The position numbers and the translations under genes were made by a program. A stretch of DNA of 64,000 nt. Source: Octopus sinensis. Lineage: Eukaryota. The stretch lies in NCBI RefSeq assembly GCF_006345805.1, contig NW_021831287.1, positions 62,001 to 126,000 of the forward strand, read 5' to 3'. This document shows, in pieces, positions 1 to 52,308 of this stretch. Position 1 is the stretch's first letter. Each line of letters begins with the position of its first letter. The notes beneath the pieces were generated by a model that saw nothing but the letters and a program-made list of their open reading frames with translations, was not told the origin of the DNA and ran no database searches.

Positions 1-80
1 CCAACAAGGCAACTCTCCTGGTGGAGGAGACACCACACAGCGCCCCCGTCTATCAGTGGAATTTTATTAGGAAAAAATGA
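1..80 (+). CDS. UTP11: 3' end of UTP11-like U3 snoRNP protein (partial)
   Basis: Frame from nt 3 reads NKATLLVEETTHSAPVYQWNFIRKK* (TGA 78-80), resembling the UTP11 C-terminus (ETxxSxxIYxxxxxRKR). Only the last 25 codons are in the window. Confidence 0.55.
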   Translation, partial: NKATLLVEETPHSAPVYQWNFIRKK

Positions 81-144
81 ATTATTATGTTTTGTTAAAA
101 GAAAATTAAATATTAATAATAGTCTATAATTGTAGTTGATCAAT

Positions 145-1829
145 ATGGAGAAAGCCGAGTATCCTCCGGAAGTATGAGTATTGTGTATAGTTAGTCGCCC
201 GACGGGAATGTGGAGTACAAGGTAGTCCTCAGGCACACCCCCAGCGAATGATAGTCCACCCTCCCGACGACCGACTGGAACACCTGCTGACCCAAATGAA
301 GTACCGTCTCGACCAAGGGAGTGGCCATGCCATCTACCTCCTGGGAGTGAACGACGATGGGTCAGTGGCCAACATTGACCAATCCCAACTACAACAGTCG
401 TGTGCCACAGTCATAGAAATGGCCAACAAGTGTGACGTGCGAGTGACGTACTCAGATTAGGGGCAAGGACACAGGTCAAGACATGTCCCCACAATGTCCT
501 CGAAGTGTGCATGTTCCAGGACTGGTCGGAGGCTGCCTCGGTTGCTGAATGTGCCCCACTTGGTAGAGACCGGAAGTGCGGGTGGCAGTAATCGGCAAGT
601 CGTATGCAGGCAAGTCCTCGTTGGTGGGAGTTATGAGTTGTGGACGACTCGACAATGGGAGGGGCCTGGCCAGACTGTCCATGCTCAGTCACTTCCACGA
701 ACTGGACTCAGGCATGACTTCCACCACAGCCCCCGTCACCCTCGGCTTCCACACCTCCGAACAAGTCCCCTTCTCTCCACAATCCCCCAACATGTCCCCC
801 ACAACTGAACTATTCAGTCAGTCCGACAGAATGGTCACCCTCATTGATTTGCCTGGCAATCACCGTTATGTCCGCACTGCCCTCCGAGGACTCACCGGCT
901 ACCACCCCGACGTGGGTCTGGTCGTGGTATCCGAGGACCACAGGACTGGTCTGCCTGTCCACGTCCAAATTGGAGTGCTTCTGGGCATGGGAGTGCGCAT
1001 AGTCGTGGTCATCAACAAGATTGATATGCTCAGTCCTGACACTCAGGCAGTCACCGATATGTTAGGAGTGCTCGCCTCTCTCGGACTGAATGGATGGGAG
1101 GTGACCCACTCCTCTCAGTTGGACACATTCTTTGAGGGTGACCAGTCGGGTGTGCCTGTCATCCCCCTCTCGTCCTACACGGGCACCAACCTCCACCTCC
1201 TCCTTCACTACATGGCTCTCCTCAGACCCCCCATCCACCACTATTCCCACCACGTCGAATTGAGAATAGTCAAAGTCTTTCGGGGCAACAAATTGATTGT
1301 GGGGGGCACTCTCCGTCGGTATATCTCCCACGTGATGTTAGGGGTGTCCTCTCCGTGGGGCAACAGTTGCATGTGGGTCCCTTTGAGGACGGGATATTTC
1401 ACTCAGTCGTGGTCGACAGTCTCCACCGGTGGAAAGTGCCCTGCAATACTCTCACCTCGGTGAAATCCTGCGTTTCAGTGGCTTTGGTGTGTTCCGACAC
1501 GTTTATTCCACGGGCGGTGAGTGTTCTGTCCTCAGTGGCAGGGTCAGGTTTGTGTGGACAATCCTTCGGGGATGTTGAATTCGCGGAGTTTTTGGGGGAG
1601 GGTGTCGTACATTGACTGTCCTTGCATTAAGTGTGGGGACATGACGACCGTGTATATGGAGGGGATTCGAGTGAGTGCCGTCGTGGCTGTATTCCCTGGA
1701 TGGCTAGTCTAGTCTGTCGAGGGGAATGTCTGTCTCTTCCAATTGAACCAGTTCGAGGCATTCCGGACTGGCTCGACATTTCTATTGGTGGATGATCAAC
1801 ACACAGCACACGGAGTGGTCTTGGCATAA
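145..1829 (+). CDS. GTPBP1/GTPBP2-like translational GTPase
   Basis: Spliced model MEKAEYPPE|SPDGNVEYK|RMIVHPPDDRLEHLLTQMKYRL matches the PPE..GNVEYK..RxEHLxTQMK motif. G1 GKSYAGKS, DLPG and NKID are present. GT-AG introns include 172-194, 222-244, 430-455 and 541-566. Ends TAHGVVLA* at 1829. Confidence 0.9.
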
Positions 1830-1847
1830 TTACTCATATTTATATAA

Positions 1848-2268
1848 TTATTTGTTATTTGTTAGAAATATTTCCAACTGGTCAACCACACGGACTAATT
1901 GTTTTCTACTGTGACTATAAAAGGATACAGTGAGAGAGCGAGCGTGTTCATTTCGTCCAGTCTGAGGGAGTGGGTATCGGCCATGACGACTGTCATAGAC
2001 TGGAATGATTAGATTGTGTACATTCATTAATTCGGTCATGACAAGGGAGTGGGCCACCATCTGGTCGTCCATTGCAGAGATATAGCCTGTCAGCCATGTG
2101 GCAAACTATAAGTCAATGACTACTCCTCACGTCGTTTCTGTTAGTATTGAAGCGGGTGGTAATGCTGGCCAGATCAGAGTCAATGGAGGAACAGACCTGC
2201 AGAGATTTGTTGATGGCTTCACTCAGGTGTTGGGGGAATTCAATGTCAGAATTATTGTATTCACCCAT
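1848..2268 (-). CDS. Hypothetical ~116-aa coiled-coil protein, weak BLOC-1 subunit 4 (Cappuccino) resemblance
   Basis: ATG at 2268; three GT-AG introns (25, 22, 23 nt) give MGEYNNSDIEFPQHL...LKQLVRVVDQLEIFLTNNK*. The C-terminal VDQLEIFL resembles BLOC1S4 IDRLEAFV. The gene model is more secure than the family call. Confidence 0.5.
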
Positions 2269-2320
2269 CACTAAACTAATTATTTAAATAATATTTATTA
2301 AATAAATAAACAATTTTATA

Positions 2321-3194
2321 ATGGGCGACTACATCAATGAAGTTCTTTTTGTAGTTAACGGAGTGCCAATGCGATTCTGCATGCGGCCATGTGAAGAGAA
2401 GGCACACGTGCGGGCACTAATCGAGACATATGGAGGGGAGTTGGTGTCCAATTCACTGCCCGACTCCATCAGACTCGACCTCCCCAACTGCCCCTTCCAT
2501 GCCAACTCGGAGACCATCTCGACTGATTACATCACCGAATGCATTCGAACAGACCAAGTGCTGGAGGACTTTCGGTGAGAGTAGTGAGTGACTGAGCAGA
2601 CTGGTGAACTGTCCGGGGAGAGAAAGGGTGGCCAAAGGGTAGTGTGTTGTCACATGTCAGTCGACTGGCCTACTCCACCAGTCAATAATCCACATCTACC
2701 AGAACAGACTGGTTGGGCGGATGAGGGGTCTGAAGGTGTGGAGGGACATGGTGAAGGTGTGTTGGCTGTGTAATGCAGGTCACCCCCCACTCCGCAGAGT
2801 CCATGCGACACCGTTTTCTTCACGTGATTTGTCCCCGCATATTCTTATATAATATCCCCATGGAGTGGAAGATGTATTTAAGTTCCTCAATCGTTGTTCT
2901 CTTGCTTAATGTTTAGTCCAGTCCATCGGAAATGTACACTGCCAGGACATCGTTGGACAGCACATTGAAATGTTGGTTATTTGGCTTATTCTAGTCCACT
3001 CTCCTATTTCTGATGACGAGTCCACTGAGTTGTGTCGGATAAGACAACATATCGACATTGGTCGGGCTTGTTTAGTGTAGACTATTGCACACGTTTTGGA
3101 AGTCGCTGTTGCCCAGGTCATCGACCGGCTGTATTCCTGTGGTGGAAATTTCCTACAAACTTATCAATATTTTTTGTCAAAGGGTTCTTCTTAG
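2321..3194 (+). CDS. TERF2IP: Telomere protein Rap1 / TERF2IP-like (BRCT-Myb-RCT)
   Basis: N-terminal BRCT (LFVVNGVPMRFCMRP..LIETYGG..ISTDYITECI), Myb (GLKVWRDMVK|VTPHSAESMRHRFLHVI) and an RCT-like C-terminus (TIAHVLEVAVAQVIDRLYSCGGNF). The junction at about 2630-2690 is ambiguous. Confidence 0.8.
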
Positions 3195-3335
3195 TTTTGT
3201 GATTTGTTTGTTTTTTGCCTGCCCTTAGTACTTTTAAAAAGCGCGTTTTTTAACTGAGGGCAACCACCGAATACTTTCAACTAATTATTATTTGCTTTAA
3301 ATAAATTTATTATTAATGTTTCATGTGGGAAATAA

Positions 3336-5357
3336 ATGACAAAAAGATTTATTAGCCAAACTTGTTCATCACCAAACATAAGTTTAAATTACTTCAGAAG
3401 TGCATTGTCAGTGGCTAACCCTAACATAGAACTAACCGCAGGTCTGTGAGTTACCCCAATTCATCAGGCGAAAAGGGCAGGTCTGTCCTTCTGTGGACCA
3501 ACTGTCTCATGGTCTCCCCCATCGGCCAATGGAAACTGTATTCCTACCAAGTCGGTCCGTCCACTGACCTTGCCCCCATTTCGAGCAGCATTTACGACGG
3601 ATTCAACTATATCTTCTCAAAGGAGGGGGAGTTGCGAGTAATCACGTGCTGACATACTTAGATGAAGGGGGGAATGTTGTCGGGGGAGTCCGTGCCCTAT
3701 CGGAGTCCTCTCACAATGTACTTGCTCTCCCTTCTCCTCAAACGGTGACTTATTGTCCTTATTGTAGACATTTGAAGGAAGCAGGACTGTTGTGTTGTGG
3801 AAACGAGTTCTACGACTCCTCTGGGTTGTGTTGATGTGATGACTGTAGGAGTGGAGTGGCCTTGGGCATTCGGGACGGGGAAGAGGGCTATTATTTGGTG
3901 GCATCCCCCAAACAAAGAGGGAGGGGTGAGGGGTCTTGGTTGGAATACCTCAACTCATTCCACCGCCGACATCTCCAGCACGTATTCAGGGAATGGAGTC
4001 TGGTAGTAGCCAAGCCGAGTGTAGTGAAGGGCCGACGACTGAGTGTGACTCCGCGGACTGTAAGGAACTGTTGATATGGCAGTACTCCTCTGGACGTGCC
4101 CCTCTCCACTATGTGTTAATATACCCCGATAGTCATGCCGAGTCAATATTCACCTTCATGGACAAACTCCGTGAATATGTGGGGACTCAGTTTGGGTGTG
4201 TTCTCGAAAGAGTGTCCTTGTATGTTTGATATGTCCAATGCAGGGTCGGGGTGGACGGAGTGTCCATCGGGGAGTATGTGAGTGCTCTGCAGGACAGTCC
4301 CCCCGCGGATATCCTCATGTGTGTATTCCCCAAGTTCAGTGACCGGGGGTACTGTCAAGTCAAATGGGAGACCTGTGTAGCTCTGGGAGGTACTCATTGG
4401 TGGGATGGTCAGTCAACAGCCAAGTGATCAGACTAAGGACTATTCGGAGAGTGCTCAGTGGGGATCTCTCCATGCAGTCACTCGCCCGACAAGTATTGGC
4501 TAAATGTGGTCGTCTCCACACACCCGTCACATTTCCCCCCAGTGTGGCCAGGGGGATGAAGGGGGACTGCATGTTGGTGGGGATGGACACCTTCCACCAC
4601 TACGCCATGTCCTTGCCGAGTGTCACTGCTGTTGTCTCCTCACTTGGGTCTGTCTTTGGTCACAAAGTCCCACTCTTCCATAACCAAGTCGAGTTTGTGG
4701 AGACTGGGAAGGAAATAGACGAACATGCATTCAGACATGTGTTGAGTGAGTGTGTCATTTGAGAGGACAGACTGTCTCCGTGCCTGGCAGTCCGTCAATG
4801 GTCGTCTCCCTTCCACCGTGGTCATTTTCCGTGACGGAATCGGGGATGAAATGTTGGAACAAGTTCTGTCGGTGGAAGTGTCGCAAGTGAGGGAGGCCAT
4901 CTCCTGTGGTGCCCAACAGGCCGGGACTGTCCCCCCCAGACTGTCCTTCATCGTAGTCAACAAGCGAGTGAGTAATTTGGTGTACCCCGTCAAGTCCCGG
5001 TTGGTGGGGACTGTGGTCGACTCGGTGGTGACGCGGTGTAATCGGTCAGTGTTGTGAGTCATGCCAGATTTGACTATTTCATGTCTTCCTGTGATTTTGG
5101 TGAACAGTCTGGTGGGATGTTGACTTATTACAACGTGTTGGTGAATGAGGACGTTTTGTCCCCTGATTTGTGTCAGTATTTGTCGTTCGGACTTACTCAG
5201 ACGTATGCTGTCTTTCCAGTTTGTTTTTTTTGTTTTTTGTCAGCAATCCACTGTCCCCTCCGTCTGCTTGTATGCCCATAAACTGGCCAGTCTGACTGGG
5301 AAGTATTTGCTCGATGACATTCACCCCTCATTTAATCGAGGACTCTTTTATTTATAG
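3336..5357 (+). CDS. PIWI-clade Argonaute lacking the PAZ domain (at most ~593 aa)
   Basis: Ten GT-AG introns of 23-26 nt. N domain GEKGRSVLLWTN..QWKLYSYQV; MID GYCQVK..NSQV..LAKCG; PIWI MLVGMD, RDG, YAHKLA and the C-terminal LFYL* typical of the Piwi clade. Confidence 0.92.
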
Positions 5358-5888
5358 ATTGCTGTCTAATAAATGTGTACTTGCTTTCTCCTTTGCTAAG
5401 TCGACTAATCAGATTGTGGTTCTCTTATCTCCATTTAATAAATTACAAGCCAGTTTTTGAACATTCGACCTCATTTTTCCATCCTGGCCATTTCTTGCAG
5501 GCATTTTTTAATTTTTAAAGCTTTGTTGAAAGTCATTTTTGTCAGTCCATTTCTGTTCATATAATTTTATCACAGCACTCTGAATACACGCCTATTCCTT
5601 TTACAATTCTGAATTAATGATAATTCACTATAAAACATGTTGTATTTGTGCATCTTTTTCACTCGTTTAGTAATCCTAACATCAGTTAAAGTTCATTTTT
5701 ATTATCAAAAATTATCGAAAACACAAATATATTGTGGCATTCCTTGCTAAATTAGAACAAGTACACTTGGCCTCGGACTTATGTTTTTGGTGAAATTTTA
5801 TATAAATAAATTATTTTACAAACTAAAAATATTAGTTAATTTATTTAAATAATAATAACCGAATAAAATAATTAAGCAGCTTACGAAC

Positions 5889-11750: not shown

Positions 11751-12726
11751 ATGGGCTTAGGACTTCAAAAGTGTTTTCTCTGTGTAATAAATTTCCCAAC
11801 CTTTGTATAACTGTGTTGTTCTCATCTACAAGCTGGTGGGGGCAGGAATTCTGGGCGTCGGCATATTTTTCATGGTCGGAGATCCCCTAAAAACCGTCTT
11901 GGCACAATACGTTCCTCCAAACAGTTCTGACATTGTCAACATGGTCACCAGCTTCAGATCCTTGTCCATCATCATCTATTTTGCCATTGCTTTGGGATCC
12001 CTACTATTCGTCGCAGGCTTTTGCGGGTGTTGTGGGGCTCTGTCCGAAAATAAATGTCTGCTGATCACTGTCCCATCCCCGACCATATTTTTAGTACTCG
12101 CTTATCGTGACAGTCATTCTGATCATCCTTGTGGGGGCTGCTATCGTCGTGGGAGCTATGCAAAACCAGGTTCGATTCTGAGACTATTCCTCAGGTCTTC
12201 ACAGCTGCCAGACAATTCCTGAAAGACTCCATTTTCGTGCATTACACTGGGAATGCCACTACGAGCGTTTACACTCTCATTTTCGACTCCATTCAATTGC
12301 TGGTTTTATTACCTGGTTGATGTCGCAGTTTCAATGTTGTGGAGTGGGGAATGCGACGGATTATTCTACTCTTCAGAACTGGAACTCTCGGGTGGTCGTA
12401 AATGGAACTCCGGTAGTTCTGCCCTACCCACCAACATGCTGCAAATTCAACGGAAGCATTCTCGACATTAATTCTATCCCTGTGAACACGATTACAAATT
12501 GCTTGGTAACCAATCGATTTAGCAGTCTTTATTCCTACACGAGCGTGGTATGTGCACTCCCTCTCATTGTAGGGATGCTTTGATAAACTTATGATGCTTA
12601 TTAAACCATACATGAACATTCTCTTGGGCGTTATGGGCGGATTGGCCGTGCTACTGGTTGTTTTCCTGACTCACTTTTTAGATCATCGTGGATGTGTGCT
12701 CGTGCTACATCATCAAAAAGAAGTAG
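11751..12726 (+). CDS. Tetraspanin
   Basis: Four hydrophobic segments, intracellular GFCGCCGA, EC2 CCG motif (FQCCG) and PPTCC. Ends CYIIKKK*. Confidence 0.9.
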
Positions 12727-15579: not shown

Positions 15580-17550
15580 ATGGAAACCAATGACGGATCT
15601 GCAATTGTCTATTTTTCTCTCACCGTGATGTTGGTATTGCTAATTCCATCAACCTACTACCTCATTCAATCATATCTGAAACCACGTTATCTCAACCTGA
15701 CTATTTACAGAACAAAATACCCGAAAACATGCCTGCAATTGTACTCCCTGTCTTAAAAAACAGTCATTCTGCCGACCATCGTCCTCAAAAAGTCACAAAA
15801 TGTGAAATATGCCAGAAATATCTCCAGGGCTTTATTAATAGTATTGGGATGGGTTGTGTTCTCCTGGATGTGTCTCTCAGTGTCCCCCACAGACAAGTCC
15901 CCCCACTCATTCGACCCCTTCGCCATTCTGGGAGTGGACGTGGTGAGTCCCCCTCCCCATCCTAGGGCTCTTCCGTGGCGGAAATAAAGGACCAGTACCG
16001 TCGACTGAGCAAAAAATTCCACCCTGACCGAGGAGGGGACGCCCAAACATTTATGAGCATCACAAAGGCCTACCAGACGTACCCTCCCCTCTCACCCCAG
16101 TCTGATGAAACCAGAAATGAAGGAGAATTGGGAGATGTACGGCAACCCCGATGGGCCAGGGGAGGTCACATTCGGGACAGTCCTCCCTGAGTGGGTCACT
16201 CGGCAGGAGAATAGGAAATATGTAAGTTGGGGGGTGGATTGTAGATATTCCTGTTGTATTTGTGTCTGGTGGTGTCCGTGGTCCCGTTGATTCTGATGTA
16301 TTCGCGGAATAAGTGCAGTGACGGAGTGATGGACGACACACGCAGACTGATGGGATATTTCTTCCATAAACACTCCGACATGACCGTGGAAAGTACTTGT
16401 TTGCCTCATTCAGGACTCCTTATTTGTCTTTCTGGGTCATTCGAGTTCCACGGACTCCCTCGAAGGACGAGTGATGCAGAGGACATGCCTCGACTACTCA
16501 AACTTGTCCCCACGGCGGGGACTCGGCAGGGGGAGAACATCCTCAACCAGCCTTTCAGTATCAAAGTCCGTACTCTCCTTTACTCTCATTTGGAGAGGAT
16601 TGATTTGAGTAGTACTGCTATGTTGGGAGGTGGGGATATGTGCTATGTGTAGATCAACGAATTGTCCTTACGACGTGTCCTCTGCTTGTTTTGGAACTGA
16701 GTAATGTGTTCAGTAATTTCGTGTCGATGGCTCACGGGGGACATGGTTGAGTGCTGTAATGTTCCCAGTCACCCACGAACCATCCATTCAGACACTCGAG
16801 AATATTATTCGTCTGTCTGTCCATTTAGTCCAGGCACTCCCTCTCGATGATTTGTCTCCTTTCCTTCAATTGCCCTACCTCGACCAGTCCAGTGTCCGCA
16901 GGGTGGTGGGAAGGAAGGTGACCTCTCTTTTTTATTGTTAGAAAATGGGTGTCCGTTCTCTGTCTGATCTGGCCAATGTGCCCAACTTATCCACATGTCT
17001 GTCCTTCCTGTCCGACCAGGAGTTGTGTGTTCTCAAGAGTGTTCTCTTCTCTCTCCCCGTCCTTGAGTTGTCTAGTAATATATATGGTTAGTTGTGTGGC
17101 AGTCATGTGTAGTGGCTGAGGACGAGAAGGAGGAGAGGACAATCACTCCCCTCTCGATTGTGACCTTTGCCATCACACTCGTCCGTAGTCCACTTGGAGA
17201 GGACACCCAACCCACCCACATTGTGCACTGTCCTTATTTCCCCAAAGAGGTGTGTGAGTCGTGGGCTGTGTATGTGTCGTGTGGGAGGAGTTTGGTGACT
17301 CAATGCGTGTTGGTGGCCGATTTGGTGGATCACAAGACGGTTGAGTGGCATCGTCCATCTAATAGGTTCAACTAAAAATGACTGCTCCTGTGAAGACGGG
17401 GACATATGTCTACTCGGTGTGTGTTCGGTCAATGTGTTATGCCGGCTTGGATGTGTGTCAGTCCGTCCAGGTTGTCGATTGGTGTTAGTTCAGATGGTTG
17501 TGTCAGGCTGTCCTCCCGAATTGAGTGATGTTGAGGAAAGTGATTATTAA
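15580..17550 (+). CDS. SEC63: Translocon protein SEC63
   Basis: N-terminal TM (AIVYFFSTVMLVLLIPSTYY), CNCTPC, J domain DPFAILGV..YRRLSKKFHPDRGG, NWEMYGNPDGPG and Sec63/Brl blocks (LPFLQLPYL, HCPYFP). Confidence 0.92.
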
Positions 17551-17578
17551 CATTGTTTTTCATAAAAAGAAAGAAGTG

Positions 17579-18721
17579 TTAGCAGGCGCTTCTCCTTTTG
17601 ATGATTTCCCCCGCACTCCTGCAGGCATACTCCACACACACCTCCAACGACCGACCACCCGACAGTCCGTATAAGAACCCTTTGGTGGTCACGGCACTAC
17701 AACCCCCCATGAAGGCGTCTCCTGCCCCGTTTGTGTTGACGATTTCGGTCTGGTTGATGGAAGGAGGGCTATATCGGACAATCTCCCCCTCTGAAGTGTC
17801 AGGGGGGAAAGAACTGTGGAATATGGTGATCTTGTTAGGCCCGTCGGTGATTACCACCGTCCTCTGTCTCGATTTATTTAGTTTGGGGAGGAGGGCCATA
17901 GTCCGAGCAATCTCAGTCACGTCCTCAAAGAAAATGCCCAGATTAAATGAGTCGACAAATGCCTCGCATTCCTTAAATAAATAAGCCTAAATACTTGTAA
18001 ATTGCCGAAACAGACGTCGACTTTGGGGAATAACTCCCTTTGCTGGACACATGCCGAGACGGAAATGAATTCTGCTCCCAGATTGTAGCAGAATATTTTG
18101 CCGAATTCAACAGCGTGGTCTGCCATGATTGTTATGGCCTCGGCAGTTTTGAGCAGGTCGTAGCCCTGTTGTAACACATCTGGTCTTACTGTTGTATAGA
18201 ATAGACCACTGTTGAACAATTGCTCCATTACTTGTGGCTGCATTACATATTCCGTGGACAGCATATCCCCAGCTCCCCCGCGAGTCACCATCGACCTGGA
18301 TTAGCCACAGTCACCCACCTGTCCAGTCCACTGATAAGCACAGCACAGCTACCAGTGGGAGTTCCATCAGTGGCCACATCGAGGTAGCTTTTTATGTTCG
18401 ACTTGGTAATAAAACGTCTCAATTTTTGTCCCATCAAATCGTCCCCCACACAGGAGATGTAGGACACTTCTCCCGATGACAGGCCTTTGAGAACGGCAGA
18501 AGTGTTGAACCCCGAGCCTCCTGGAGAGAGTGTCACGTCCTCTGCTGTCATTAGAGCGTCAAATCTGAGTTTTGAGAGAGAAAGAACAGTTCGTCGTGGA
18601 ATGGCAGGGAGCGAATTGCTCCGTCGGGTTTGAGTCCAAATTGGGCTACGAAAGTGGGAGTGACATCGGCGACAATGTCCATGAGGATGGCTCCCATGCC
18701 GACACATGCAATATGGCACAT
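17579..18721 (-). CDS. ADK: Adenosine kinase (PfkB family)
   Basis: CVGMGAILMDI, PGGSGFNT, SCVGDDLMG, TGSCAVLI, VCFGN, RTVVIT and NTNGAGDAFMGG signatures. Confidence 0.92.
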
Positions 18722-24581: not shown

Positions 24582-27500
24582 TCAACACAAGTCCTCAATC
24601 TCATCAAATACATCTTCGTCCACACCCCCAACACCCACTTCTCGTCTAATCCTGTCCAACATATCCCGACTGACGTACTCGCTCACCCTCCTCCCCAATT
24701 CCCTCTCCAACACAGCCACATGTTCATAGGCCTTCCTCCAGTCCTCGAAGGAGTAGTACAATCCACATAAATAAGCACGGACATGAACAGTACGGACTGC
24801 CCGGTCTATTCCAGGCTCCTCTAACAGTTGCCGACACTTCTGTTCTTCTTCCCCCTTCATTCTGCCCCCCACAACTCCATCAAACACACTCGCCAATCTG
24901 ATCCTTTCACGTAAATCAGCAATGTTCTCGTCGTAGTTCTCCCTCTCTTCCATCTTCTCTTGCAAATTCCCGCCCAAACCAATTCGATCTCCAAAATGTG
25001 GGCTCATCTGGGGGCCTCGCTTAGGAATGTCAGCAGAATTAGCCTTTTGGTAGTACCCGATGGCCTCACCCCAGGCCAATGTGGCCTTGTTGTAATCTCG
25101 ATACTCATCAATCTCCAATTGGGCACATGCACAGTAAAAATTGGCAATCAAATGATGTGCTTTGGCCTTCGAATAAAGTCTCAGAATCTCCTTCATCAAA
25201 CTGGGTGTTTCACTCCAATTTAAAGACTGAAGATAATTTCCCGCCATTATGTATAATTGAGGGTCACGTGATAGGTTTGCCACTCTAAGCACTCTTTCCG
25301 TGTCTCCTCCTCTTATTAGAGCCTTCAGAGCATTCTCTGTCTGCCCGGAGAGAGTGTACAGTCGACTGGCCACTTCATATTGGCCATTATTCATGCAATT
25401 TAAAGCCAAAGAAGAAATTGTGCTCTCATGCAAAGAGGACCTCTTCTGAGTTTCCAACTTTGACAGAATTTTAAAAGATAGTTGAGGAGTCAGCACTATT
25501 TTGTGAGTATTGCACAGTTCGAGGGCATCACAGGGTTGTCCGGAGTTTATTAGGACAGTGATTGCCTTTTCAATGTGCCCTTTATTAACAAAGTACTCCG
25601 CACAGTAAGACACCATCTCAGGATCAGTACTATTCACTGACTTTCCAACAGGATCCCCATCCTATAAAAATATAATAAGCATCACTAAAATGTTAATATT
25701 TTTCGCGCTATCGTTTAAATAATTTATTACACATGCGGTTAGCCGGTTTAAAAATAAAAAATACAGTGTCCAAAGCAAAGCTGTCGGCGAGTTCTTGAAA
25801 GGAAGTAAGATGGTCAATATGGAGGGCCAGCTCGAATGCTTTCGACAAGTCCCCAATCTGAATACATGCACTGTCAACCAACCTGCTGATACAACGTGAT
25901 TGCCCTTTCCTCCATTCCAGGAATATCCTTCAATTCGAGTGCTACTTTCCGTGCCTCCCCTGGGAGTGCCTTCCCAGCCAGAATTGCCATCTCCGAATAA
26001 GACTGACTGGCCTACTGGACTGACCACACTACGACTGCCCTCAGCAGACGGATTGCCTTGGAATAACACTCTCCTTTCTTGTAGTACTCGATTGCTCTCC
26101 CAATCTCCCCCTCGTTTTCATAGTACTTCCCAATGTAGATGTAACACACTGGGTGACCACATTTGTCACTCATCTCCAATGCCTGAAGGTTAAGGATAGT
26201 CCAACCTCCTCTATTCTGTTGCACTGACACAGTACTGACACAGCTGACTCAATGTCACCAATGGCCGTCAATAAGGATATTCCCGCTTTTACTTTCTTAC
26301 AATTTATTAATACATTTGCCAACGACTTTTTCATTTTACTAAATAATTAAAATAATAAAAAACATATTATTCCCCTGTTCTATTTTTTGCCTTAAAATAG
26401 GCAGGGAACTCTCATCTGGCTTGAACCACAAATTATTCACTTCCAGACCACCCGCCCCATCGCATAATTCGGGCCAGTAATTAAGCATATTCTCCACTTC
26501 CTTCGAGCCTTCCAAGTGCTTTGCCCTTCGAAGCCTAATTACTGCTTCCTGCATTTTGTGAGACTCCTGGGCGACTTGCAAAGCCTAATATTGATAATTA
26601 CAAATTACTTTTCCCCAGTCTCCCGAACATTGATATAACTCGGTCAGCTTGGACCCTGCCAGCAGATCAGAGAACTACCAAATATGCCAACAATATACCT
26701 CCTCTCCCACACACCCTGCCAAAACTCCCAGGATGACGTCATCAGACTCGTTCTTTACTGCCCTGTAGGCTAACAGAGAACACGTGTCCTCTAATTTGGC
26801 GAGGCAGGTGAGACAGAGCTTGATTTTTCTGTATTTGACACACAATTTGGCCATCTTCTTCCAAACCACCTTCCTTCAATTAAAATACAATTCCCCACTC
26901 TGTCACATGTCCTATAGACTTGACAGCCTCCTCCAAACTGCCAGTCGTAGACAGATAGGCAAATTCCATCATGTCAGAATGTTCTATAACATGCAACAAC
27001 AAAGCCACTTAATTTTCCCTCCAAATTTCGAAAAGTATGGACAACCAAATCCGAAGACACGTGATCAAATCCCAGGGAATTAGTCTACCATTCACATATA
27101 AAAACAAACTTGGCTAACAAAATAGACAGAAAGGAGAGACATCCCCGCCAGCAGCCTAAACGTGGAGGGAGCTGCCAATGTCTCAACCAAGAGCAATCCT
27201 TTGGGCGAACAGGCAAGGATAGCCAGACCATATATGTTCTAGAATATTCGAGAACATTCTACATTGTTTTTGGATTGACAGACAATAAATCGACTGTCAT
27301 CCTCATCCCAGGCGTGTCTCGTCGCACAGCACTGCAAGGATTTGACTTGTTTGGTCACCACATCCACAACAAATAAGCGGGAATCCACTTGTCCTCTGAT
27401 CTGTTAATAGAACACCCACAAACAACATTCTTAACAAGGAGAGACACATAATTCCCCCCAGAATTGCACTTTACATCCACAAACTCCCCAAAGTCCTCCA

Positions 27501-29523: not shown

Positions 29524-32500
29524 TTATTTGTTACATGAGCCGAATTCTGAACATATTTGCATAATATAAACCACATCCGACGACTTCACATTCGAGGCTC
29601 TCCTCAAATAATTAATGGGGACGTACCCCACCACTTGCTTGGACTCGGCCAGGCAAAATCCGTACTGATTTGGAGAGCCTTTGACGACCACGACTTGTCC
29701 CCTTTTCATTTGAAGTTGTTTGCCCTGCCAATGACTCAATCCACCCACCATGTTGGCCGTGACGTTGATTGCGGAGACTGGATCATAATCCAGAATGGCC
29801 ACATAGTGGTTGTCACTGCTGGGAGTCAGGCTGCTTTTCCCCCCCTTTTTAGTCTGGATTTGCTTTATTTTTTCGATATCTGTGATCTCCTGCACGACAT
29901 TGCTCGGGACATAGCCAAAGCGACCGCGACACTCCCCCTGATAGAACCCATCTGAGTCAATTTCCCCATAAACCTATCAAATACACTCAAAAACTCCACT
30001 TTGATAACATCATCCTTCATAAATGCTATTTCCTCGTCAATTATGTCCTGATTGGGGGACATTTTGTGGGGGTCGTAGGTGTAGAGGGCCAGAAAATACC
30101 GAATCTGGAAATCATTTGGCGAATCACCTTAATTTTGTTTTGTTGGGTCGCCAGATTCTCCGAATACTCAGAAAAGTCACTCAAAAACTGATTTCCTCTG
30201 CCCTTTATGTCTGAATCTGAAGTCTCCACTATTCTGGGCTGCTTTATCATAGGCACAGCAGTCTGCTTAGTTTTTAAAAGCTTTGTGTCTTCCTTAAGAA
30301 CACTCTCCTCTGTGGATTCAGAGATCTACAATATGTCGGATGGAGACCTGGAAAACATCCCAAATAAGTTTTTTGGTGACTTCGAATGGTTCACTGTCGG
30401 CAGTTTCTGTTCCGTCGTAACTCATAGTCCGGATGGTGGCTTTCCTGGCCATTCCCTTCCTCAAACAGCAGGCAGGAAGAATAACATAATCGCCTGTAAT
30501 AAACCACTCTCTCACATCACTTTTTGGTCCCGATATTTTTTTGACCAATTCTCCGTCGACGTAGAAGGCGTACCCCTTTGGTCCACACACCGAGTCTTTT
30601 TCGGGGGGAGGTCGCCAACTCACGAGGAGACTGCCCAACTGGGGACCCGGCTCAATCACCAAGCCCGTGGGAATGTTAAAAGCACCAGGAATAACAGAAA
30701 TATCAAACATGGCTCAGTCGTGCGGAATAACGTTGTTTCTGAGTCGCTGGTGATTCGCTGCTTTTTCTGGGAGTCGATAAACACGGCGGTCAGTCTGAGT
30801 TTGTACTCTGTGAGGGGATGGAGGTGGGAAATAGTAGCCCGGACTATCCCCGACTTGACGAAGCCATGTCCGAATCGTCAATATACACAATGTGATGACA
30901 GTTGCTGTTCCCCGGTAGCCAACTCACCGTCACCGAATACCCCGTCACATGTTCTACTCGCACATTGGAGGGGGAGGAGGATGCCCCTGCAATGTGTGTA
31001 GGAAGTCAACCTCGGCCAATCAGGAGAGTGCACTGAGCAGGGTCGGACTGAGTGTACAAGTCCATTCTGTTCACTACGCTTATTCTCGATAACTAAAAGT
31101 GGAGTCACAATCCAACCTCCTCGTACTCAATGTCCTCCAAAATGTGCTTTGGCTTGTTGGTTCCTGAGATTGATGCCATTTTTATGCCATTGAAATAAAT
31201 GTCGAAGAATTGGTTGTCGTTGGGGGATTTTAGTGAGGGTGGAGACGTCCAGGATATGAGCAGTCCTTTGTTGAATTCTCTCTCCACTTTTAATTTCATT
31301 GGTGGTAGGACGACCCCACGTGACACATCCCTCTCCACAACACTACTTTGTTGAGTCTATACATTCATCACCAACCACTACCTCACTGCCCTCTCTTCTC
31401 CTTTCTCTCAAATCTGCTTATTACCACAAAACTAAAACCACATTCGTCTGTTTGAGTCTGTCCAGTGGTCGTGTGGATCTCAGTTTGTGTAGTCCCCACA
31501 TAACACGTCCGTCTGACCACCTCCCTTTGGAGAGACAAGTCTCCTTTATTACTGTTCATTTGTTCCTCTAACGAATTTATTTTGGCCTCAAAATTCTGAA
31601 TTTGTTGACGTGAAATTACTATTTTTTGACTGTCCAAATGTGAGTTCAATTCTTTGATTGAAATTATTTTTTGCCTCAATTCATTCTGAAGGGCACGGTT
31701 CTCCTCCTTCAATTCCTCAATGATCTGCCCTTCAGTCACAAACTATACTTTATCGTCTCTCTTGTTTACAATCTGGGGAACTCGGAGTGAACTGTCGGCA
31801 CATTCTTTACTCAGTCGTTCGTTCTCTTCCTTGACCTGCCAATACTCCAAAAGACACACCAATTGTATCCGCTTCTCTAAATGCTCAATCTTGGACTTTT
31901 GCTGAGTAGTCAGCACTTTTAGTTCGTTATTGTTTTTAGTCAGACGCTCATTTTCCCGTGTCTGTGAAATGTCACGACAAACTACATTTTCAGCCACTTG
32001 ATTTGCGAGATGTGTAAATCTGCTTAACTCAGCTCTGAGGGCTGCATTGGTCTCGTCCAGTGCCCTCGTCCGGTCCCTTTCCAAGTCGTACTGAGCCTTC
32101 ATTCGGTGGTTCTCTCGTTGCATATAAGCAATCTATGGACACATTATGCCTCCGAACTAATACACCAGCACTACTGCCCTATAAACCTCTCTTATGCGTA
32201 TTATTAAATGTGTTATTGTTTAAATTGATTAGCAATATCGCGCTAGTCGATAATGCGTGCTTAGTCCCTCGGGCATACCGTGTTGTGCTTACTCTCAATT
32301 TCCTCAGTCAGCAGAGTTATCTTTGTCAGGTTTTCTGCCAGTTCTTGTCGTAGGAATTTCTCCACATCATTTTTGGAATTCCGAAAAAACGAAATGCCAC
32401 CGAGTCTCTAAGGATTTGTTCATTCTATATATACAAATACCTTACATCCATACATTGCAGTCTCAGATGTTCTATCACCTTTTCCTGCTGGTCTCTTTTT

Positions 32501-32649
32501 CTTTCGCTCTGTTTATATTTCTCACTCAAAATGTCGAGTTGTCGCGTTTTTACCAACAGTTTTTTCTCCTATTGGATTCTACAATTTGTACTCACTAAAA
32601 TCCTTATTTTTGTGCTCTGGTTATCTTTTGAGGGCTCTATATTGTCCAT
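29524..32649 (-). CDS. RIMBP2: RIMS-binding protein-like (coiled coil, FN3 repeats, two SH3)
   Basis: SH3 FLALYTYDPHKMSPNQD..EEIAF..K|VYGKIDSDGFYQGECRGRFGYVPSNVV, terminal SH3 YVAILDYDP..GYVPINY, and FN3 starts PPMKLKVE..LLISW and PTGLVIEPGPQLGSLLVSWRPP. The 5' end is approximate and could extend toward 32940. Confidence 0.88.
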
Positions 32650-33067
32650 TTTGTAGTCCGATTAAGCACAGCCAATTAAACCCGAATTGAGCACATTTTG
32701 CTTTAAAAAGCACTCACACTTGCAATCAATGTACACATTTTGCCATCTGTGCCTCCTTCTCCGATCAATATGGCAATCAATTATTCAATTAACACTTGAA
32801 ATGGGCAACTTAATTGTGTTGTTCGACATTAAGTTCGATTTTCATCACTCTTTGTTGGACACTCGTCATGGATCGATGACAAATTGGAGGATTATCATTT
32901 ATTCTGATCGTCTCCCACATGTCAAATATAAGAGGACGCCATAATTGGAGAGGGACCTTCAGACTTGAAAAATTAATTTATTTTAATTCTTATCTTATGA
33001 ATTTAATTCTGATTTAAAACTTCAAATTAATCTGATTAAACGCGAAATTTTTCTTCAACTTCTACTC

Positions 33068-34000
33068 CAGCAGTTCTCAATCGTGGTCCCCAGGAATTTT
33101 GAAAAAATTAAAATATATTATATTTTAAAGTAATTGTGTAATTAAGTATAAATAAAAAACATTGAAATTAACGTGATTTATTTTCAAGGTTTATCATTCT
33201 AGTTATTGTTAACAAGAATCGTCGTCTTTGGTCAGATTCTTAAGTTCAATTTGGATTTACTAAATTCATTGCCTGAAATAATGAAATAAATGCATGATTT
33301 GCCATATAATTGTGGGAAACAATTCACTGAAACCTTCTCAACTTAGGCGGCACAAAGAGTCTGTACACTCAGAAAATTGTTGCTCACATGAATATCTTAA
33401 ACTCAAAAAAACTAAATTTGATTCACAGCTGAATGGTTTAATAAATCCAAAGATAAACCGAGATTAGAAGCATCCTAAGCGTTAATTTTAATTTGTATCT
33501 AAAAATAGGTCTCAAAGATTATTGCAAAAAAACAAAACTGTACACAATTCTGGGGAAAAGTCAATTAAATCAGCGGCTTTTGAAATGGGTCGAATTTTAT
33601 TTGGTCCAGATGCAGTTAAGGACATACCGTTATTCAACGATTCAATTTCCCATAGAATTTCAGAATTGTCATGTGATATCCTGGAGCAATTAATTAAACG
33701 AATTATTAAAAGTATTAGATAAGCATCCAATTGGAGGAGTCAATTGACATTTCTAACGTCTGTCAGCCTGTCTTCTTTGTTGATGATGTGAATATCATTG
33801 ATGAGTTTTTATTTTGTTTGGAGAGAGTACATTTTTAATATTTTTGACAATTTTATGAAGACGAATAAAATCCAATGGGACAAAGTTGGGAACATTAAGA
33901 TAAACTCTCAACATTGTTTAACAATATGCTTGAAAGAAATGACTTTTCAGAGCTTGGAAGAGGATACCTGTGACAGTCGAGAACGAAAATAAGTTATCTG
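33068..34000 (+). mobile_element. Degenerate hAT (Buster/Charlie-like) DNA transposon
   Basis: hAT-like end CAGCAGTTCTCAA at 33068. Remnants CMICHIIVGNNSLKPSQLRRH, HNSGEKSIK..PLFNDSISHRISEL and IQLEESIDISN..DEFLFC match ZBED5/Buster transposases. Many stops; right end not found. Confidence 0.8.
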
Positions 34001-35803
34001 GACCGCTAGAGAACTTAAATTTGTTATTTTAAAAAATAAACTACTGAAGATTCTTGCACTAATCATTGGATCGGATTTGAGAACTTTTAAATCGATATTT
34101 ATTGAAAAGCAGGAGAGCCTTTAGAACTGGGAGATCAAAAACTGATTTACTAAATGATTACTGTGCTATTTGTAAGAAAATAGTTATCTAACGTATAATC
34201 GACACATCAATGAGTAGTTTCCGTCAAATGCATAAATGCAACAACTCCATTCAGTGACACGTAAAATATTACATCCTCAGAGCAGTAAATGGATGTAACC
34301 TTTGAATCGTAGGCATTCGTTATATTATGGAAATATACTAAGTGAAGGCGTGTAATATGGAGATTTCTTTCTTTTTTTCTGTAATCGAAATAACAAAATC
34401 ACCGAAACCATCAGAATATATACCTAGTTTGGATTAATACGTGCACTCTATTCCTTGCTCCTTGCCCAAGTCCCATTTCATTAATGAACGCAACTGGGTG
34501 TTTATATTGACTGGTACTCAGATGAGAGGTAATGTCTTTCTCGTTTGTGGATGTTGTTTCTTTTTAATTTTCCATATTTCAATTAATCTCAAAATGCTGA
34601 CAATAAAAACTAAAAACCGTTTCAAATAAAAAGCTGTTACCCCACGACCTTATTGTCATTTCAAACATAGAGGATCTTGCTATTATCATTTCGATACATG
34701 AAATCTCTACAAAGCCAAGGGTGGTTTCATTGAACTATACTGATAATTTCTTACTTACTTAACGAATTTTCTATGATTTTTAGTTTAACAAAAAATTTTA
34801 ATGAGAACTTATATGAACTTTCTTGAAAACTGAAAAAAAATGACTTGAAAGGCAATAAACTTACAAATTTTTAATGATTAAAATACCTAGCCTAAGGCTC
34901 ATTCTTTATTTTAACTCTAGTTCTATTGCAAAGCTATATGAACTTCAAGTCAAATATCAGATCTACAACAAAATTTTAGAAAAAAAGCTGCTGTTTTCTT
35001 TGACATTTGATCCATATTTTTCGATTTTATGAAAATAAATCCATTTTCATTTATACTCACAACAAAATAAGCACGCGTGTTAATGTGTTTATTTAATTTT
35101 CGTTTTGATGTTTTAGTACTTTGACTCGTATGAAGACTGTGTGAAACTTTAACATCTGAAATAAACAAACGAATGTCATCTTTCCACCTGCGCTTTCAAA
35201 CCGTGTGCTCTTCCATTACGTCAGAATTCTGAATAGCCTCTATTCTACTATGATTCCTTATATCTAAATATGTCATTTATTTCTTATTTTATTAAATTTT
35301 ACTAGTTATTTTCCGCTTCATTAGTTGCTAAAATACCATTATTACCACATTCTCCTAACTGAATTCTTCGTTTATTGAAGAAGCGTATAGAGAAATAGAT
35401 ATGATTTAGCCTGTGTACAATCAAAGATTCAACCATATAAAAAATCACAATTCAATGTTTTAAGTCTGTATATACGCATTTAAATCGATTTGTAAAATTT
35501 TCAAAAAATCGATTTTTTGAATAAAAAGCTAATTTCTATAATATTAATTTTACTTACAATCACGATTATTAAAGTTCCAACAAAGCGCTTAAAATTGAAG
35601 TTGACGTCGAAAGATGTTAATTTAAAAGGCACTTGGCAATTGATTATGGATCATGAATAACGTCGACCTATGTACTATTTAGTTAGAAAAGTCAAAAAAA
35701 TAAGTCAATTACCAAAGTAATTAATTATGGTTAGCCCAATGAATGAAGGGCGTGTTCATCCATTAAACTGACTATAAAAATGTGAGCAACGCCTAATTGT
35801 CAA

Positions 35804-37011
35804 ATGTCGAAAAGCATCGTGTCTCATGGACCCATGGACCTACGAATTGTATTTTATAATTTTTTAATCCACAAAGGATACGCTTGAAATACCTCAAGTC
35901 CAAGACGACGGTAGATTTGGCAGCTCTGAGTCATAACTAGACGTCCTAATAAATATAAAATCAGTGGGCGTGTGTGGGACGGACATCACAATTTGGAAGA
36001 ACGGAGGACTCGGGGGAGTCAGGAACGTTCGACCTCTCCGCATTGGTCACGAGCCGGCCGGGATTGTTGAGAAGGTTGGCTGCAATGTCAGAAACGTCAA
36101 GCCAGGTGAGTGTTATGGAATATAAAAGGCGACCGAGTGTGCATAGAACCACTCATTGCCTGCGGGGAATGTCGCTTCTGTAAACTGGGACGTGGGAATT
36201 GCTGTTCCAATCAGGGATATTTGGGGGTCCACGACACGGACGGGGCACTGACACAGTACCACACACAGCGAGCCGACTGTTGCTACATGTATGGTTTTCC
36301 AATGAGACCTCAGCCTCCCCGATTCCTTGTCCTTCGACGAGGGAGCGATGGTTCAGCCTCTTTCGATAGCCGTCGGAATTTGCAAACGAGCGGGAATTTC
36401 ATTTGCACAAAAAGTGGTGATTGGTGGGACAGGAGTCATCGGGACATTGTGTATGATGGTTGCCCGGGCCTGTGGGGTTTCGAGGATTTGTGTCACTGGT
36501 TTGGGACTGTGTCATTCATGTAGATATTCTTGAGGATCGAGTCAACTTTGCACTCAAAAAAGGAGCCGATTGTGGCGTGGTTGTCAAAGAAGAGGACAGT
36601 CCAGCAGAAATTACTCAGAAAATAGTTGCCGAATTGGGGGGCATGGCTGACGTGTCTTTGGACTGTTGTGGGGTCTCTTCCAACATTGAGAGCATTCTGC
36701 AGGTAGGACTCAAATGGTTATGACAGGCCACTTTGCCTGGAGGAGTTCTGACGTTGGTGGGGATCTCGACTGGGATTTTATCTGCCAAAAATGTTGTCTT
36801 CAAAAACCTCGACGTTCGGGGATTTTATAAAACATTCAACTGGTAATGTTTTGTGAGGATTGCAAGCTATCCTGAGGCTATTGATCTTATCGAACAGAGA
36901 AAAGTCGACGCAGCTTCAATCATTTCTCACAGAATCCCCTTCGAAGAATATCAGACTGCATTCGACAACATGGTCTCGGGAATAGGAATGAAAAACATAA
37001 TCTACTTTTAA
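35804..37011 (+). CDS. Sorbitol-dehydrogenase-like Zn-dependent MDR
   Basis: VGVCGTD, IGHEPAG, GDRVCIEP, CGECRFCKLGRGNCC, GTGVIG and YPEAIDLI; micro-introns 23-30 nt. Confidence 0.88.
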
Positions 37012-49960: not shown

Positions 49961-50028
49961 TGGCTCATGGCACAATGATGATTATTATTTTAACCCAAGA
50001 ATCACCAACAGTTAATTAGGGTAATTAA

Positions 50029-50600
50029 TTAGGTGATTCTAACAATCCTCAAAATCTTTCTCAGTTTTTCCCGATGTTGGACTCTGGACCCAATGCAAGT
50101 GCGGGACGGGCGGGGAGCAGTTTTTGTGAGGAATTGGATTGGGGTGATGTACTTCTGATTGTTGAAGTCTTTTGGCAGGTGGTCTTGTTGGATGGCTAAG
50201 AAACCCTTTCCATCTTTCTTAATAAGTTGGTCAAGCGGAGTTGGGGTAATGTTGTTCAGTTTGGAAATTTTCGTTATGCTAGCCGCATAGTGTAGTCTCA
50301 ATTTTAAGGCGGTTAGACCATGAGAGATTAGAACCCCAAGCGGCACAGGCATAGCCAATTGTTGGTTCGATGAATTGTTTGTAGAGGGTGCCAAGAGCCG
50401 GGAACGGTGTCTTTAGTCCACCAAAAATCGATTTGATTAGTCTAATCTTTCTCTGACTGGATCTGATGGCCTTCTCTAAATGGGCAGTAAAACACATGTG
50501 GGTGTCAAAAGTTACCCCCAGAATTTTAGGGTTCTTCGTGAATGGGATCTTTTCGTTGTCCAGAAAAAGATTCAGATTTTTATATTAATACAATATAAGA
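50029..50600 (-). mobile_element. 3' part of a Jockey/I-like LINE ORF2 (thumb region), frameshifted
   Basis: PKILGVTFDTHMCFTAHL..LYKQFIEPTIGYACAAWG. Confidence 0.75.
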
Positions 50601-51088
50601 AAATCTGAATTGGGGGCAGAAGCGTACTTTTCGTTGTCAACCTTCACACCGTGTCTGTGCTCAATGAACATACTCCCCAACTTCTTTTAAGCATAACCGA
50701 CTGGATTTATTTCCTAGTTCCTACTTCAATGAATGACTGCATAAGAAAATCTAATTAGCCTAATTTAAGTAACAAAATTTAAATCAGGTTAAATTTCATC
50801 TATTTTAATAAAAAACTTTAAAAAAACTAGTCTGTGAAGCTTTATTAGAAACTTCCTCTCGGAATTGATAATTTCCATGGGCCACGAATTAAAACGTATA
50901 AACGTATTTGATTGTTTTGGCCAATTTATAAGTTTAACCTTGTAGTTTTTTCATATCTCGTCTTAGTTTTTATAATTGGTCTGAAAAGCAATAATTTGTA
51001 TTTATTTTTAAATTATATTAACTATCTTATTTTTATTTGAAAACAATAATATAATACCGATTTTGCATTTTAAATAACAAATTTAATA

Positions 51089-51909
51089 ATGGAAACAGCG
51101 ACATTCAAGAAGGGAGTTATAATTTTTTTATCTATATTATTGCTGGTTTTAAATGTTTCTAACTTATTTTAATCATAGTTACTTTCATTGGGATTTATTG
51201 TAATCTCATCTCTATATGGAATAGAGTTTAAATTTTTAAACACTTTTGAAAATAATATCATTCTATATTCACTTCCTATTGGGATAGGTTGCTTATCTGG
51301 AATTTTCATCTTTTTGATTTCAATTAGTGGATTCATATCTATATCCAGAAAAAATAAATGCATTAAAATATTTGTATTCTAATAGATTTTATCTAATTTT
51401 AGTTTATTTTCGGTCTTTTAACCGTCCTGATTCTTTGCTTAGCAATTATTTCGGGGTTGTTAAGCTTTCAGCCTGTAATAAAAATGGGAATTCGTTCATT
51501 CTTCAAGGCTTTAATTGATGATTACGATAAAAACATTAAGTTTATTGACGATCTTCATAAAAAAGTGATTAAATCTTATATTTATCTAATTCTTCGTTAG
51601 CTTAACTGTTGTGGTTATAATAACGGGACTTCACAAGATATACGAATATTGCCAGAGACTTGTCCTAACCATAATTGCGATATATCAAAGGTTTTAGTAT
51701 TTATTTTATTTTAGACTTGTCCGTCAGTTTTATTAAATTATATAAATGAGCTTTTCCTCTACATTTATATAGGAACTGGAACAATGGGTTTTCTAATTGT
51801 AAATACTTTAATTTTTTACTAATAGTTGTTGTCCATTTTTTTCACATTTTACATGTGGAAATTTAAAGATAAAAATATCTTCAAAACACAATCAAAAAGT
51901 ACTAATTGA
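51089..51909 (+). CDS. Divergent, very AT-rich tetraspanin-like protein
   Basis: Four hydrophobic segments, SGFISISRKNKC after TM2, and EC2 LNCCGYNN..LPETCPNHNC. Joined by GT-AG introns of about 25-35 nt. Confidence 0.7.
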
Positions 51910-52308
51910 CATTTTAACCCTTTATTAAATAAATAAACTCATTAACTACTTAGTCTGCTAATTATGTAGTGAATTTTCTGAATAAACTCGACGCTCGATA
52001 AACCTTTCTCTTGTTCATCTTCTCAGTTTGTAAACCTCTGAAAATAATGTTGAGGCTTATTTAAATCTGTCTGGCTGTAAAAAACTATTTTTCAAATTAC
52101 TTTTTGTAAAAATAATCTATATTTCATGTTAAAACAATCGTAAAACTAACTTCATTTTGCTTTTATAGATCTAGAAGTTGTGTGGATTTTAGATACTAAA
52201 AATCAATATGATGTACTTTGTTTTAATAATATCTTTGTGTTTATATATTCAGACTAATTTAACGGGCTAAGTATGAATTTTATTCTTTTTCAAAACCATC
52301 TTTCTACG

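Follow-up and report, generated by a model that had tools for sequence, protein, structure and literature searches.

The 64-kb stretch of DNA analyzed here (hereafter the window) contains a gene that, we conclude with high confidence, encodes in its assembled form a PIWI-clade protein from which the PAZ domain has been excised and in which the slicer residues have been kept. The gene occupies positions 3336-5357 of the plus strand and comprises 11 exons and 10 introns, with a stop-free open reading frame (ORF) of 1782 nt for 593 amino acids, the maximum length proposed in the original prediction, which was made from the sequence alone and described a PAZ-less PIWI protein with an intact 5′-phosphate pocket and slicer tetrad. 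PAZ counts among the domains that define eukaryotic Argonautes: it reads the 2′-O-methylated 3′ end of the guide, helps to set guide length and protects the guide. We hold, only slightly less firmly, that the deletion is very likely real in the organism and not confined to the assembly. What would make the protein unusual, judged from its sequence, is the combination of a missing PAZ with a complete catalytic tetrad.

The ORF extends from an ATG at 3336 to a TAG at 5355-5357, and a TAA directly 5′ of the ATG (3333-3335) closes the frame. All ten introns have GT-AG borders and are 23 to 26 nt long, and the open segments between them alternate in frame. The start codon, exon 1 and the splice junctions were assigned from the sequence, and the final 11-exon model is supported by later profile alignments of every exon (Table 1). 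An automatic path using the fewest introns gave introns of 35 to 46 nt and was biologically implausible; the model with introns of 23 to 26 nt, which the profile alignments back, was preferred. An alternative frame for exon 3 (LDEGGNVV...) was rejected because it could be joined by no GT-AG intron of suitable length and because it is the chosen frame that matches the N/L1 profile of Piwi. An upstream ORF of eight codons (3316-3339; ATG TTT CAT GTG GGA AAT AAA TGA, MFHVGNK*) has a stop codon that overlaps the Piwi start as ATGA.

Piwi (PF02171) is the sole Pfam domain in the protein (residues 279-576, E value 1.3e-38, 133.5 bits, the cut-off being 28.9). Its best relatives among all chains of the PDB, searched with phmmer, are animal PIWI proteins, namely PIWIL1 (PDB ID: 9s0z, E 2.2e-30) and Siwi (PDB ID: 5guh, E 1.1e-29), with sponge, fly and mouse Piwi chains at E values of 1e-28 to 2e-24 and human AGO1-4 more weakly matched at 1e-15 to 1e-11; the corresponding bit scores are 89-109 for the Piwi chains versus 47-60 for AGO1-4. 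A neighbor-joining (NJ) tree of the MID-PIWI region, a crude method applied to 19 Piwis, 9 AGO-like proteins and the model, separated the model and the Piwis from the AGO-like proteins in 100 of 100 bootstraps, with the model as a long basal branch. In agreement with the tree, the YAHKLA motif and the LFYL C terminus are of the Piwi type. These comparisons support the assignment of the 593-residue protein as a PIWI-clade homolog, as had been predicted. A word-indexed protein search with the full 593-residue sequence gave no match, and no second Piwi copy was found in the window by tblastn or with a whole-Piwi hidden Markov model (HMM), which matched only the exons of this gene. The best short matches in an exhaustive HMMER search with exon 9 were ordinary Piwi fragments, and three proteins of ~600-650 residues that had been considered as PAZ-less Piwis (P0122, P0132 and P0074) proved to be N-terminally truncated fragments that contain PAZ.

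The site of the missing domain was mapped against a profile of 18 aligned full-length canonical Piwis drawn from the exon-9 search, with P0013 as the reference. Pairwise profile comparison with hhalign placed model residues 158-593 on P0013 residues 404-850 (L2-MID-PIWI; probability 100%, E 1.6e-47), a match that spans from the 'NPERR...WG...GR.L' segment of L2 to the C terminus of P0013, and placed model residues 34-141 on P0013 residues 95-230, from the N domain to the 'IGRNYYD' motif with which L1 begins (probability 83-94%, E 9e-6 to 1e-7). The N-terminal part scored 44.2 against an N/L1 sub-profile (10.8 ± 1.8 for 150 shuffles, with a maximum of 17.6) and 9.6, which is under the shuffle mean, against a PAZ-region profile; the L2 piece taken on its own is weak, its score being matched by 2 of 150 shuffles. 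Between these anchors the model has 16 residues (142-157) in place of the 173 residues of P0013 (231-403) that hold the last strands of L1, PAZ and the 'LIPELC..TGL' start of L2. An alignment with MAFFT E-INS-i agrees, setting GVALGIRDGEE-GYYLVAS opposite the 'LWPGF.TSI...E..L.L.ADVS' hairpin of L1. When near-invariant columns are defined by a conservation of 90% or more in the 18 Piwis (58 in total), all 10 of those that fall in the deleted region are gaps in the model. At the nucleotide level GVALGIRDGEEGYYLVASPK (residues 141-160, 3853-3912) is adjoined by QRGRGEGSWLEYLNSF (3913-3960) within one continuous exon, 3849-4059, and the 3912/3913 junction named by the original prediction, between an L1-like and an L2-like segment with no DNA in between, proved exact.

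Pfam searches gave the same picture. No PAZ match was obtained in the protein, PF02170 being absent as the original prediction had expected, and the N-terminal half had no match of any kind even at E ≤ 10; the Piwi_N, ArgoN and ArgoL1 models were also without a match in the 593-residue model. In P0013, used as a positive control, Pfam recovered PAZ with an E value of 1.4e-34 together with Piwi_N, ArgoN and ArgoL1. The first 225 residues of the model alone gave neither a PDB sequence match nor a Pfam match, N/L1 being recovered by profile-profile comparison only, and the assignments of N/L1 and L2 rest on that comparison. A missing Pfam match alone would not decide the matter; what decides it is that the anchors leave no room for PAZ. 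By profile comparison the N domain and both linkers are present, and the PAZ sought between L1 and L2 is not.

The protein is strongly diverged, with its functional residues selectively kept. Among the 58 near-invariant columns, 35 are kept, 13 differ and the remaining 10 are those lost with the deletion. The 5′-phosphate pocket is retained: Y291 and K295 (GYCQVK), Q307 (NSQV) and K334 (LAKCG) all fall on near-invariant columns and align with the motifs of Siwi and MIWI, and Q330 is likewise kept on such a column. The DEDH tetrad is complete, with D362, E404, D436 and H568 standing in the phmmer alignment opposite D670, E708, D740 and H874 of Siwi, which we take to be the published DEDH residues of that protein; the E404 column holds glutamate in 16 of the 18 Piwis and aspartate in the other two. 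Further kept positions are M357 and G360 beside D362 (VGMD), R435 and G437 beside D436 (FRDGIGD), K569 beside H568 (YAHKLA) and the C-terminal leucine. No RG, GR, RA or AR dipeptide occurs in residues 1-33, ahead of the N domain, counted from the modeled start. The pocket, the tetrad and the missing RG/RA tail had each been read correctly from the sequence at the outset.

The explanation that we favor, as probable if by no means assured, is that this is an intact gene for a fast-evolving PIWI-clade Argonaute that would function as a small-RNA-guided slicer without a PAZ domain. The ORF is intact, the ten introns preserve the frame and an AATAAA lies near the stop codon, all of which support this explanation. 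A clean internal deletion would have taken the end of L1, the whole of PAZ and the first helix of L2, about 155-175 residues, and left an N-L1-L2-MID-PIWI architecture of 593 residues. The MID/PIWI pocket (Y291, K295, Q307, K334 and the C-terminal carboxylate) would hold a small single-stranded guide RNA by its 5′ monophosphate, the nucleic-acid channel along which the guide is threaded would still be shaped by the N-L1-L2 scaffold, and the DEDH center would slice the base-paired target RNA. The guide's 3′ terminus would not be held by the protein. In canonical pathways, in which Piwis bind PIWI-interacting RNAs (piRNAs) of 21-35 nt, PAZ recognizes the 2′-O-methyl 3′ end of the piRNA, and 3′ trimming runs to the footprint of the protein. 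In the present case guide length and 3′-end protection would be set otherwise than in canonical piRNAs, and the guides may be shorter or less protected. Because there is no PAZ, recognition of the 2′-O-methyl group by that domain would be impossible and PAZ-dependent reading of Hen1 methylation unneeded; because there is no RG/RA tail, docking of Tudor proteins via methyl-arginines would be unlikely. From the observed architecture and residue conservation we infer expression, RNA binding and slicing, as well as these effects on the guide 3′ end.

Such a protein seems feasible because precedents exist. According to a review, PAZ-truncated human AGO2 forms an RNA-induced silencing complex if slicer activity is kept but cannot mature its complexes when the passenger strand is uncleavable (PMC5084781), and prokaryotic Argonautes of the long-B type that lack PAZ, as well as the AfAgo-N/AfAgo heterodimer, accommodate guide and target in a groove (PMC10954474).

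The DNA probably derives from a dicyemid such as Dicyema japonicum. Animal introns as short as those described here have been reported only for myxobolid myxozoans and for D. japonicum, both of which have reduced, GT/AG-only splice signals (PMC13644364). A long exon on the minus strand of the window (24582-25637) encodes IFT140/IFT172 tetratricopeptide-repeat (TPR) and IF140 C-terminal TPR domains (E 2.5e-40). Myxozoans, to our knowledge, are without cilia; an IFT140 gene points to a ciliated organism and therefore favors a dicyemid over a myxozoan, so that a myxobolid, in spite of its ultra-short introns, is the less likely source given this cilium gene. The D. japonicum genome is described as containing 49% repeats, with mention of long interspersed nuclear elements, and a mean intron length of 38 bp (PMC6736024). 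Supplementary Table 2 of PMC12147562 lists D. japonicum with Tudor counts of T0=0, T1=1 and T3=2, four Piwi-like and zero Ago-like genes, and a BUSCO completeness of only 32%. If the source is D. japonicum, the present gene may already be included in that published orthogroup count; the main text of the paper, as available, holds no discussion of dicyemid gene architecture or PAZ loss. If the other three Piwi-like copies carry PAZ, the present gene may be a derived side-copy; if they are without it, the lineage would run on PAZ-less Piwis.

Several results weigh against a working slicer. Where PAZ has been lost in prokaryotes, the PIWI domain is catalytically dead as well, the opposite pairing to that proposed for the present gene (PMC10954474). 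The exhaustive HMMER search with exon 9 (4773-5042) returned 296 Piwi/Ago relatives, none above 48% identity, and no self-match. Outside the deletion the model departs from the canonical Piwis at 13 of 48 near-invariant positions (among them GGxxW to CGRLHT, NPPPGT to KSRLVGT and QGT..P to QSGGML), and a Piwi MID-PIWI HMM gives 224 bits for the model, about half the score of canonical Piwis (415-540 bits). This divergence and low score make relaxed constraint possible; the original description of the protein as 'streamlined' understates how far it has diverged. The changed positions, the HMM score and the long basal branch in the NJ tree would also fit a paralog that lost its PAZ by deletion and is now drifting, whether as a decaying young pseudogene or as a neofunctionalized protein with a non-slicing role such as a scaffold or dominant-negative binder, and the four Piwi-like genes reported for D. 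japonicum make redundancy plausible. To this explanation we give an appreciable but minor likelihood. The 1782 nt of coding sequence contain no stops or frameshifts, the splice sites of all ten introns are intact, and all of the 5′-phosphate and catalytic residues have been kept amid the other changes, which looks like selective retention. Divergence alone is in any case weak evidence for decay because dicyemid proteins are generally fast-evolving (PMC6543705).

It is very unlikely that the organism has PAZ exons which a collapsed or wrongly joined assembly has dropped. Gaps, besides 49% repeats, are indeed a feature of the draft assembly published for the likely source (PMC6736024). At the junction, however, the exon is open and uninterrupted and the frame is kept, runs of N are absent and no direct or inverted repeat lies nearby; a collapse would have had to excise about 470-520 nt without shifting the frame and to bring what is left of L1 and L2 cleanly together. 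A split Argonaute, in which a PAZ-like module encoded by a separate gene acts in trans so that the guide 3′ end is still held, has an archaeal parallel in the N-L1-L2 module supplied in trans to AfAgo (PMC10954474). When ORFs of at least 15 residues in all six frames of the window were searched with a PAZ-region HMM (P0013 columns 231-403), however, the best E value was 1.3, and Pfam found no PAZ in the six frames of the upstream 3.3 kb (1-3335) or in the downstream ORFs. We know of no eukaryotic precedent for a split Argonaute and consider this arrangement extremely improbable.

If the gene is a PAZ-less PIWI slicer, as we favor, it would offer a natural experiment on what the MID-PIWI lobe and an N-L1-L2 scaffold can do by themselves in an animal, and it would be informative about what determines the length and stability of guides that are not anchored at their 3′ end. 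PAZ loss, which accompanies loss of catalysis in prokaryotes, would be uncoupled from it in the present gene. The gene would also provide a concrete example of the shrinkage of small-RNA pathways in parasites that are themselves extremely reduced, and a eukaryotic slicer of 593 residues could interest engineers of compact programmable nucleases. It is quite doubtful, if conceivable, that dicyemids as a whole lineage silence transposons and genes with PAZ-less PIWI-clade slicers. Were this true, they would do so with a genome reported to be without AGO-clade genes and almost without Tudor genes; guide 3′-end anchoring, PAZ-defined trimming and 2′-O-methyl recognition would be dispensable for an animal piRNA-like pathway, and an Argonaute without PAZ would owe its viability to the kept DEDH tetrad. 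A drifting paralog, on the other hand, would be a mere curiosity of a fast-evolving genome.

The remaining features of the window are collected with those of the Piwi gene in Table 1. The transposon remains mentioned in the original prediction are present as reverse-transcriptase remnants; the reverse-transcriptase domain at 52.5-53.8 kb is split over two frames and therefore belongs to a frameshifted, decayed retroelement. A tandem array at 62100-62432 contains ~16 copies of a 21-nt unit, with a higher-order unit of 63 nt (86-89% matches); the frames around it are open on both strands, and it possibly codes for a seven-residue repeat. AT-rich stretches with a GC content of 0.29-0.35 (32001-36000, 50001-52000 and 60001-62000) alternate with blocks of 0.49-0.52 (for example 1-2000, 16001-18000 and 42001-44000), and the GC-rich block at 42-44 kb has a strong GC skew of +0.215 and coincides with a reverse-transcriptase fragment. 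Neither Rfam nor a tRNA scan gave a match in the window.

Table 1. Coordinates of the exons, introns and protein segments of the PAZ-less Piwi gene and of other features of the window.
Feature	Position	Strand	Remarks
Exon 1	3336-3441	+	Residues 1-35, short N-terminal tail without RG/RA; putative start codon
Exon 2	3468-3637	+	Residues 36-92, start of N domain (GEKGRSVLLWTNC...YSYQV); hhalign to Piwi N/L1; whole-Piwi HMM E 0.0019
Exon 3	3662-3744	+	Residues 93-120, N domain; frame by intron length and hhalign of SPLTMYLLSLLLKRHLKEAG to Piwi N/L1 profile
Exon 4	3768-3824	+	Residues 120-139, N/L1 boundary; CCGNEFYDSS matches Piwi IGRNYYD; profile alignment
Exon 5	3849-4059	+	Residues 139-209, L1 remnant, site of missing PAZ and L2, uninterrupted
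Exon 6	4083-4219	+	Residues 210-255, start of MID
Exon 7	4244-4389	+	Residues 255-304, MID; Y291 (4350-4352), K295 (4362-4364)
Exon 8	4413-4745	+	Residues 304-415; Q307 (4421-4423), K334 (4502-4504), D362 (4586-4588), E404 (4712-4714)
Exon 9	4771-5044	+	Residues 415-506; FRDGIGD with catalytic D436 (4833-4835)
Exon 10	5068-5218	+	Residues 506-556, PIWI domain
Exon 11	5244-5357	+	Residues 557-593 and stop; VPSVCLYAHKLA with catalytic H568 (5277-5279), Piwi-type C terminus LFYL
Introns 1-5 of Piwi gene	3442-3467, 3638-3661, 3745-3767, 3825-3848, 4060-4082	+	
Introns 6-10 of Piwi gene	4220-4243, 4390-4412, 4746-4770, 5045-5067, 5219-5243	+	
Residues 142-157 (VALGIRDGEEGYYLVA)	3856-3903	+	Sole sequence between N/L1 and L2 anchors; hhalign anchors, MAFFT
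L2 linker, residues 158-215 (SPKQRGRG...FREWSL...KGRRL)	3904-4100	+	Inside hhalign alignment of E 1.6e-47; spans intron 5 (4060-4082)
Pfam Piwi match including introns	4314-5303	+	PF02171
AATAAA, likely polyadenylation signal	5368-5373	+	11 nt past stop codon
ORF with EF-Tu-type GTP-binding domain	576-1463	+	E 1.8e-17; upstream of Piwi gene
Weak BRCT_2 match	about 2369-2567	+	E 1.8e-4, under Pfam cut-off; upstream of Piwi gene
Tetraspanin	11803-12222	+	E 4e-10
Reverse-transcriptase (RVT_1) fragment	42071-43246	-	
RVT_1 pair	52469-53179, 53074-53826	+	One reverse-transcriptase domain over two overlapping frames
Clathrin heavy-chain linker	56102-56779	+	E 3e-6, 27.6 bits, just under Pfam cut-off of 27.8
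PHD-finger protein	57427-58446	-	E 4e-6

Compared with canonical animal PIWIs of the same clade (mouse/human PIWIL1, 9s0z; Siwi, 5guh; sponge Piwi-A, 7kx7; Drosophila Piwi, 6kr6; E 2e-30 to 2e-24), the present protein shares the order N, L1, L2, MID, PIWI, the Y-K-Q-K pocket, DEDH, YAHKLA and LFYL. It differs from them in having 16 residues for 173 and no PAZ, in the lack of an RG/RA tail, in its length of 593 residues versus about 830-980, and in the change of roughly one-quarter of the otherwise near-invariant positions. Full-text literature searches, including searches for dicyemid Piwi, Argonaute and piRNA, yielded no description of a naturally PAZ-less animal Piwi gene. PAZ-lacking PIWIL2-like isoforms have reportedly been seen in human tumor cells; these are isoforms and not genes. 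The literature on PAZ-lacking proteins that was retrieved concerns prokaryotic Argonautes, the PIWI-like protein of trypanosomatids (PMC3528672), Dicer and deletion constructs.

The remark in the original prediction that a PAZ-less Argonaute from animals was not known to its author agrees with the literature retrieved as far as Piwi genes are concerned, but is softened by a protein of Trichinella pseudospiralis (KAL1233612.1, P0124). This AGO-clade protein of 1309 residues is a head-to-tail duplication, both copies of which have ArgoN, ArgoL1, the end of ArgoL2, ArgoMid and Piwi but not PAZ, the L1 motif running straight into the end of L2; DEDH-type motifs are readable, and it is only 32% identical to the exon-9 query. 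KAL1233612.1 is an unverified gene model: exons may have been skipped in its prediction, or it may be another animal Argonaute without PAZ. Because this model exists, the flat claim that animals have no PAZ-less Argonaute is best avoided. It differs from the present protein in being duplicated and of the AGO rather than the PIWI clade.

The PIWI-like protein of trypanosomatids (Leishmania LinJ.21.0470, PIWI-tryp) is also eukaryotic, from a parasite and PAZ-less, with DDH kept, but it is ~133 kDa in size, has a long unrelated N-terminal region and a reported mitochondrial localization, and forms a group apart from animal Piwis (PMC3528672). The present protein is set apart from it, on the basis of that family description, by its 593 residues, its recognizable N/L1 and its grouping with animal Piwis. 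Prokaryotic Argonautes of the long-B type (PAZ-less or with PAZ*) and AfAgo-N/AfAgo likewise have N-L1-L2-MID-PIWI and no pocket for the guide 3′ end, and they still take up 5′-phosphorylated guides and targets in a groove to which N-L1-L2 contributes (PMC10954474). Their PIWI domain, however, is catalytically inactive, as is that described for short prokaryotic Argonautes, and an effector is often associated with them (PMC10954474), whereas the present protein has a complete DEDH and belongs to the animal PIWI clade; its gene is spliced and eukaryotic, has an EF-Tu-like GTPase, a weak BRCT match and a tetraspanin as neighbors, and is not part of a prokaryotic operon with an effector or N-L1-L2 partner. 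We see no sign of common descent for PAZ loss between these prokaryotic Argonautes and the present Piwi. The same pairing of a missing PAZ with a kept slicer is described, in the review cited above, for engineered PAZ-truncated human AGO2 (PMC5084781), which is, however, a laboratory construct of the AGO clade.

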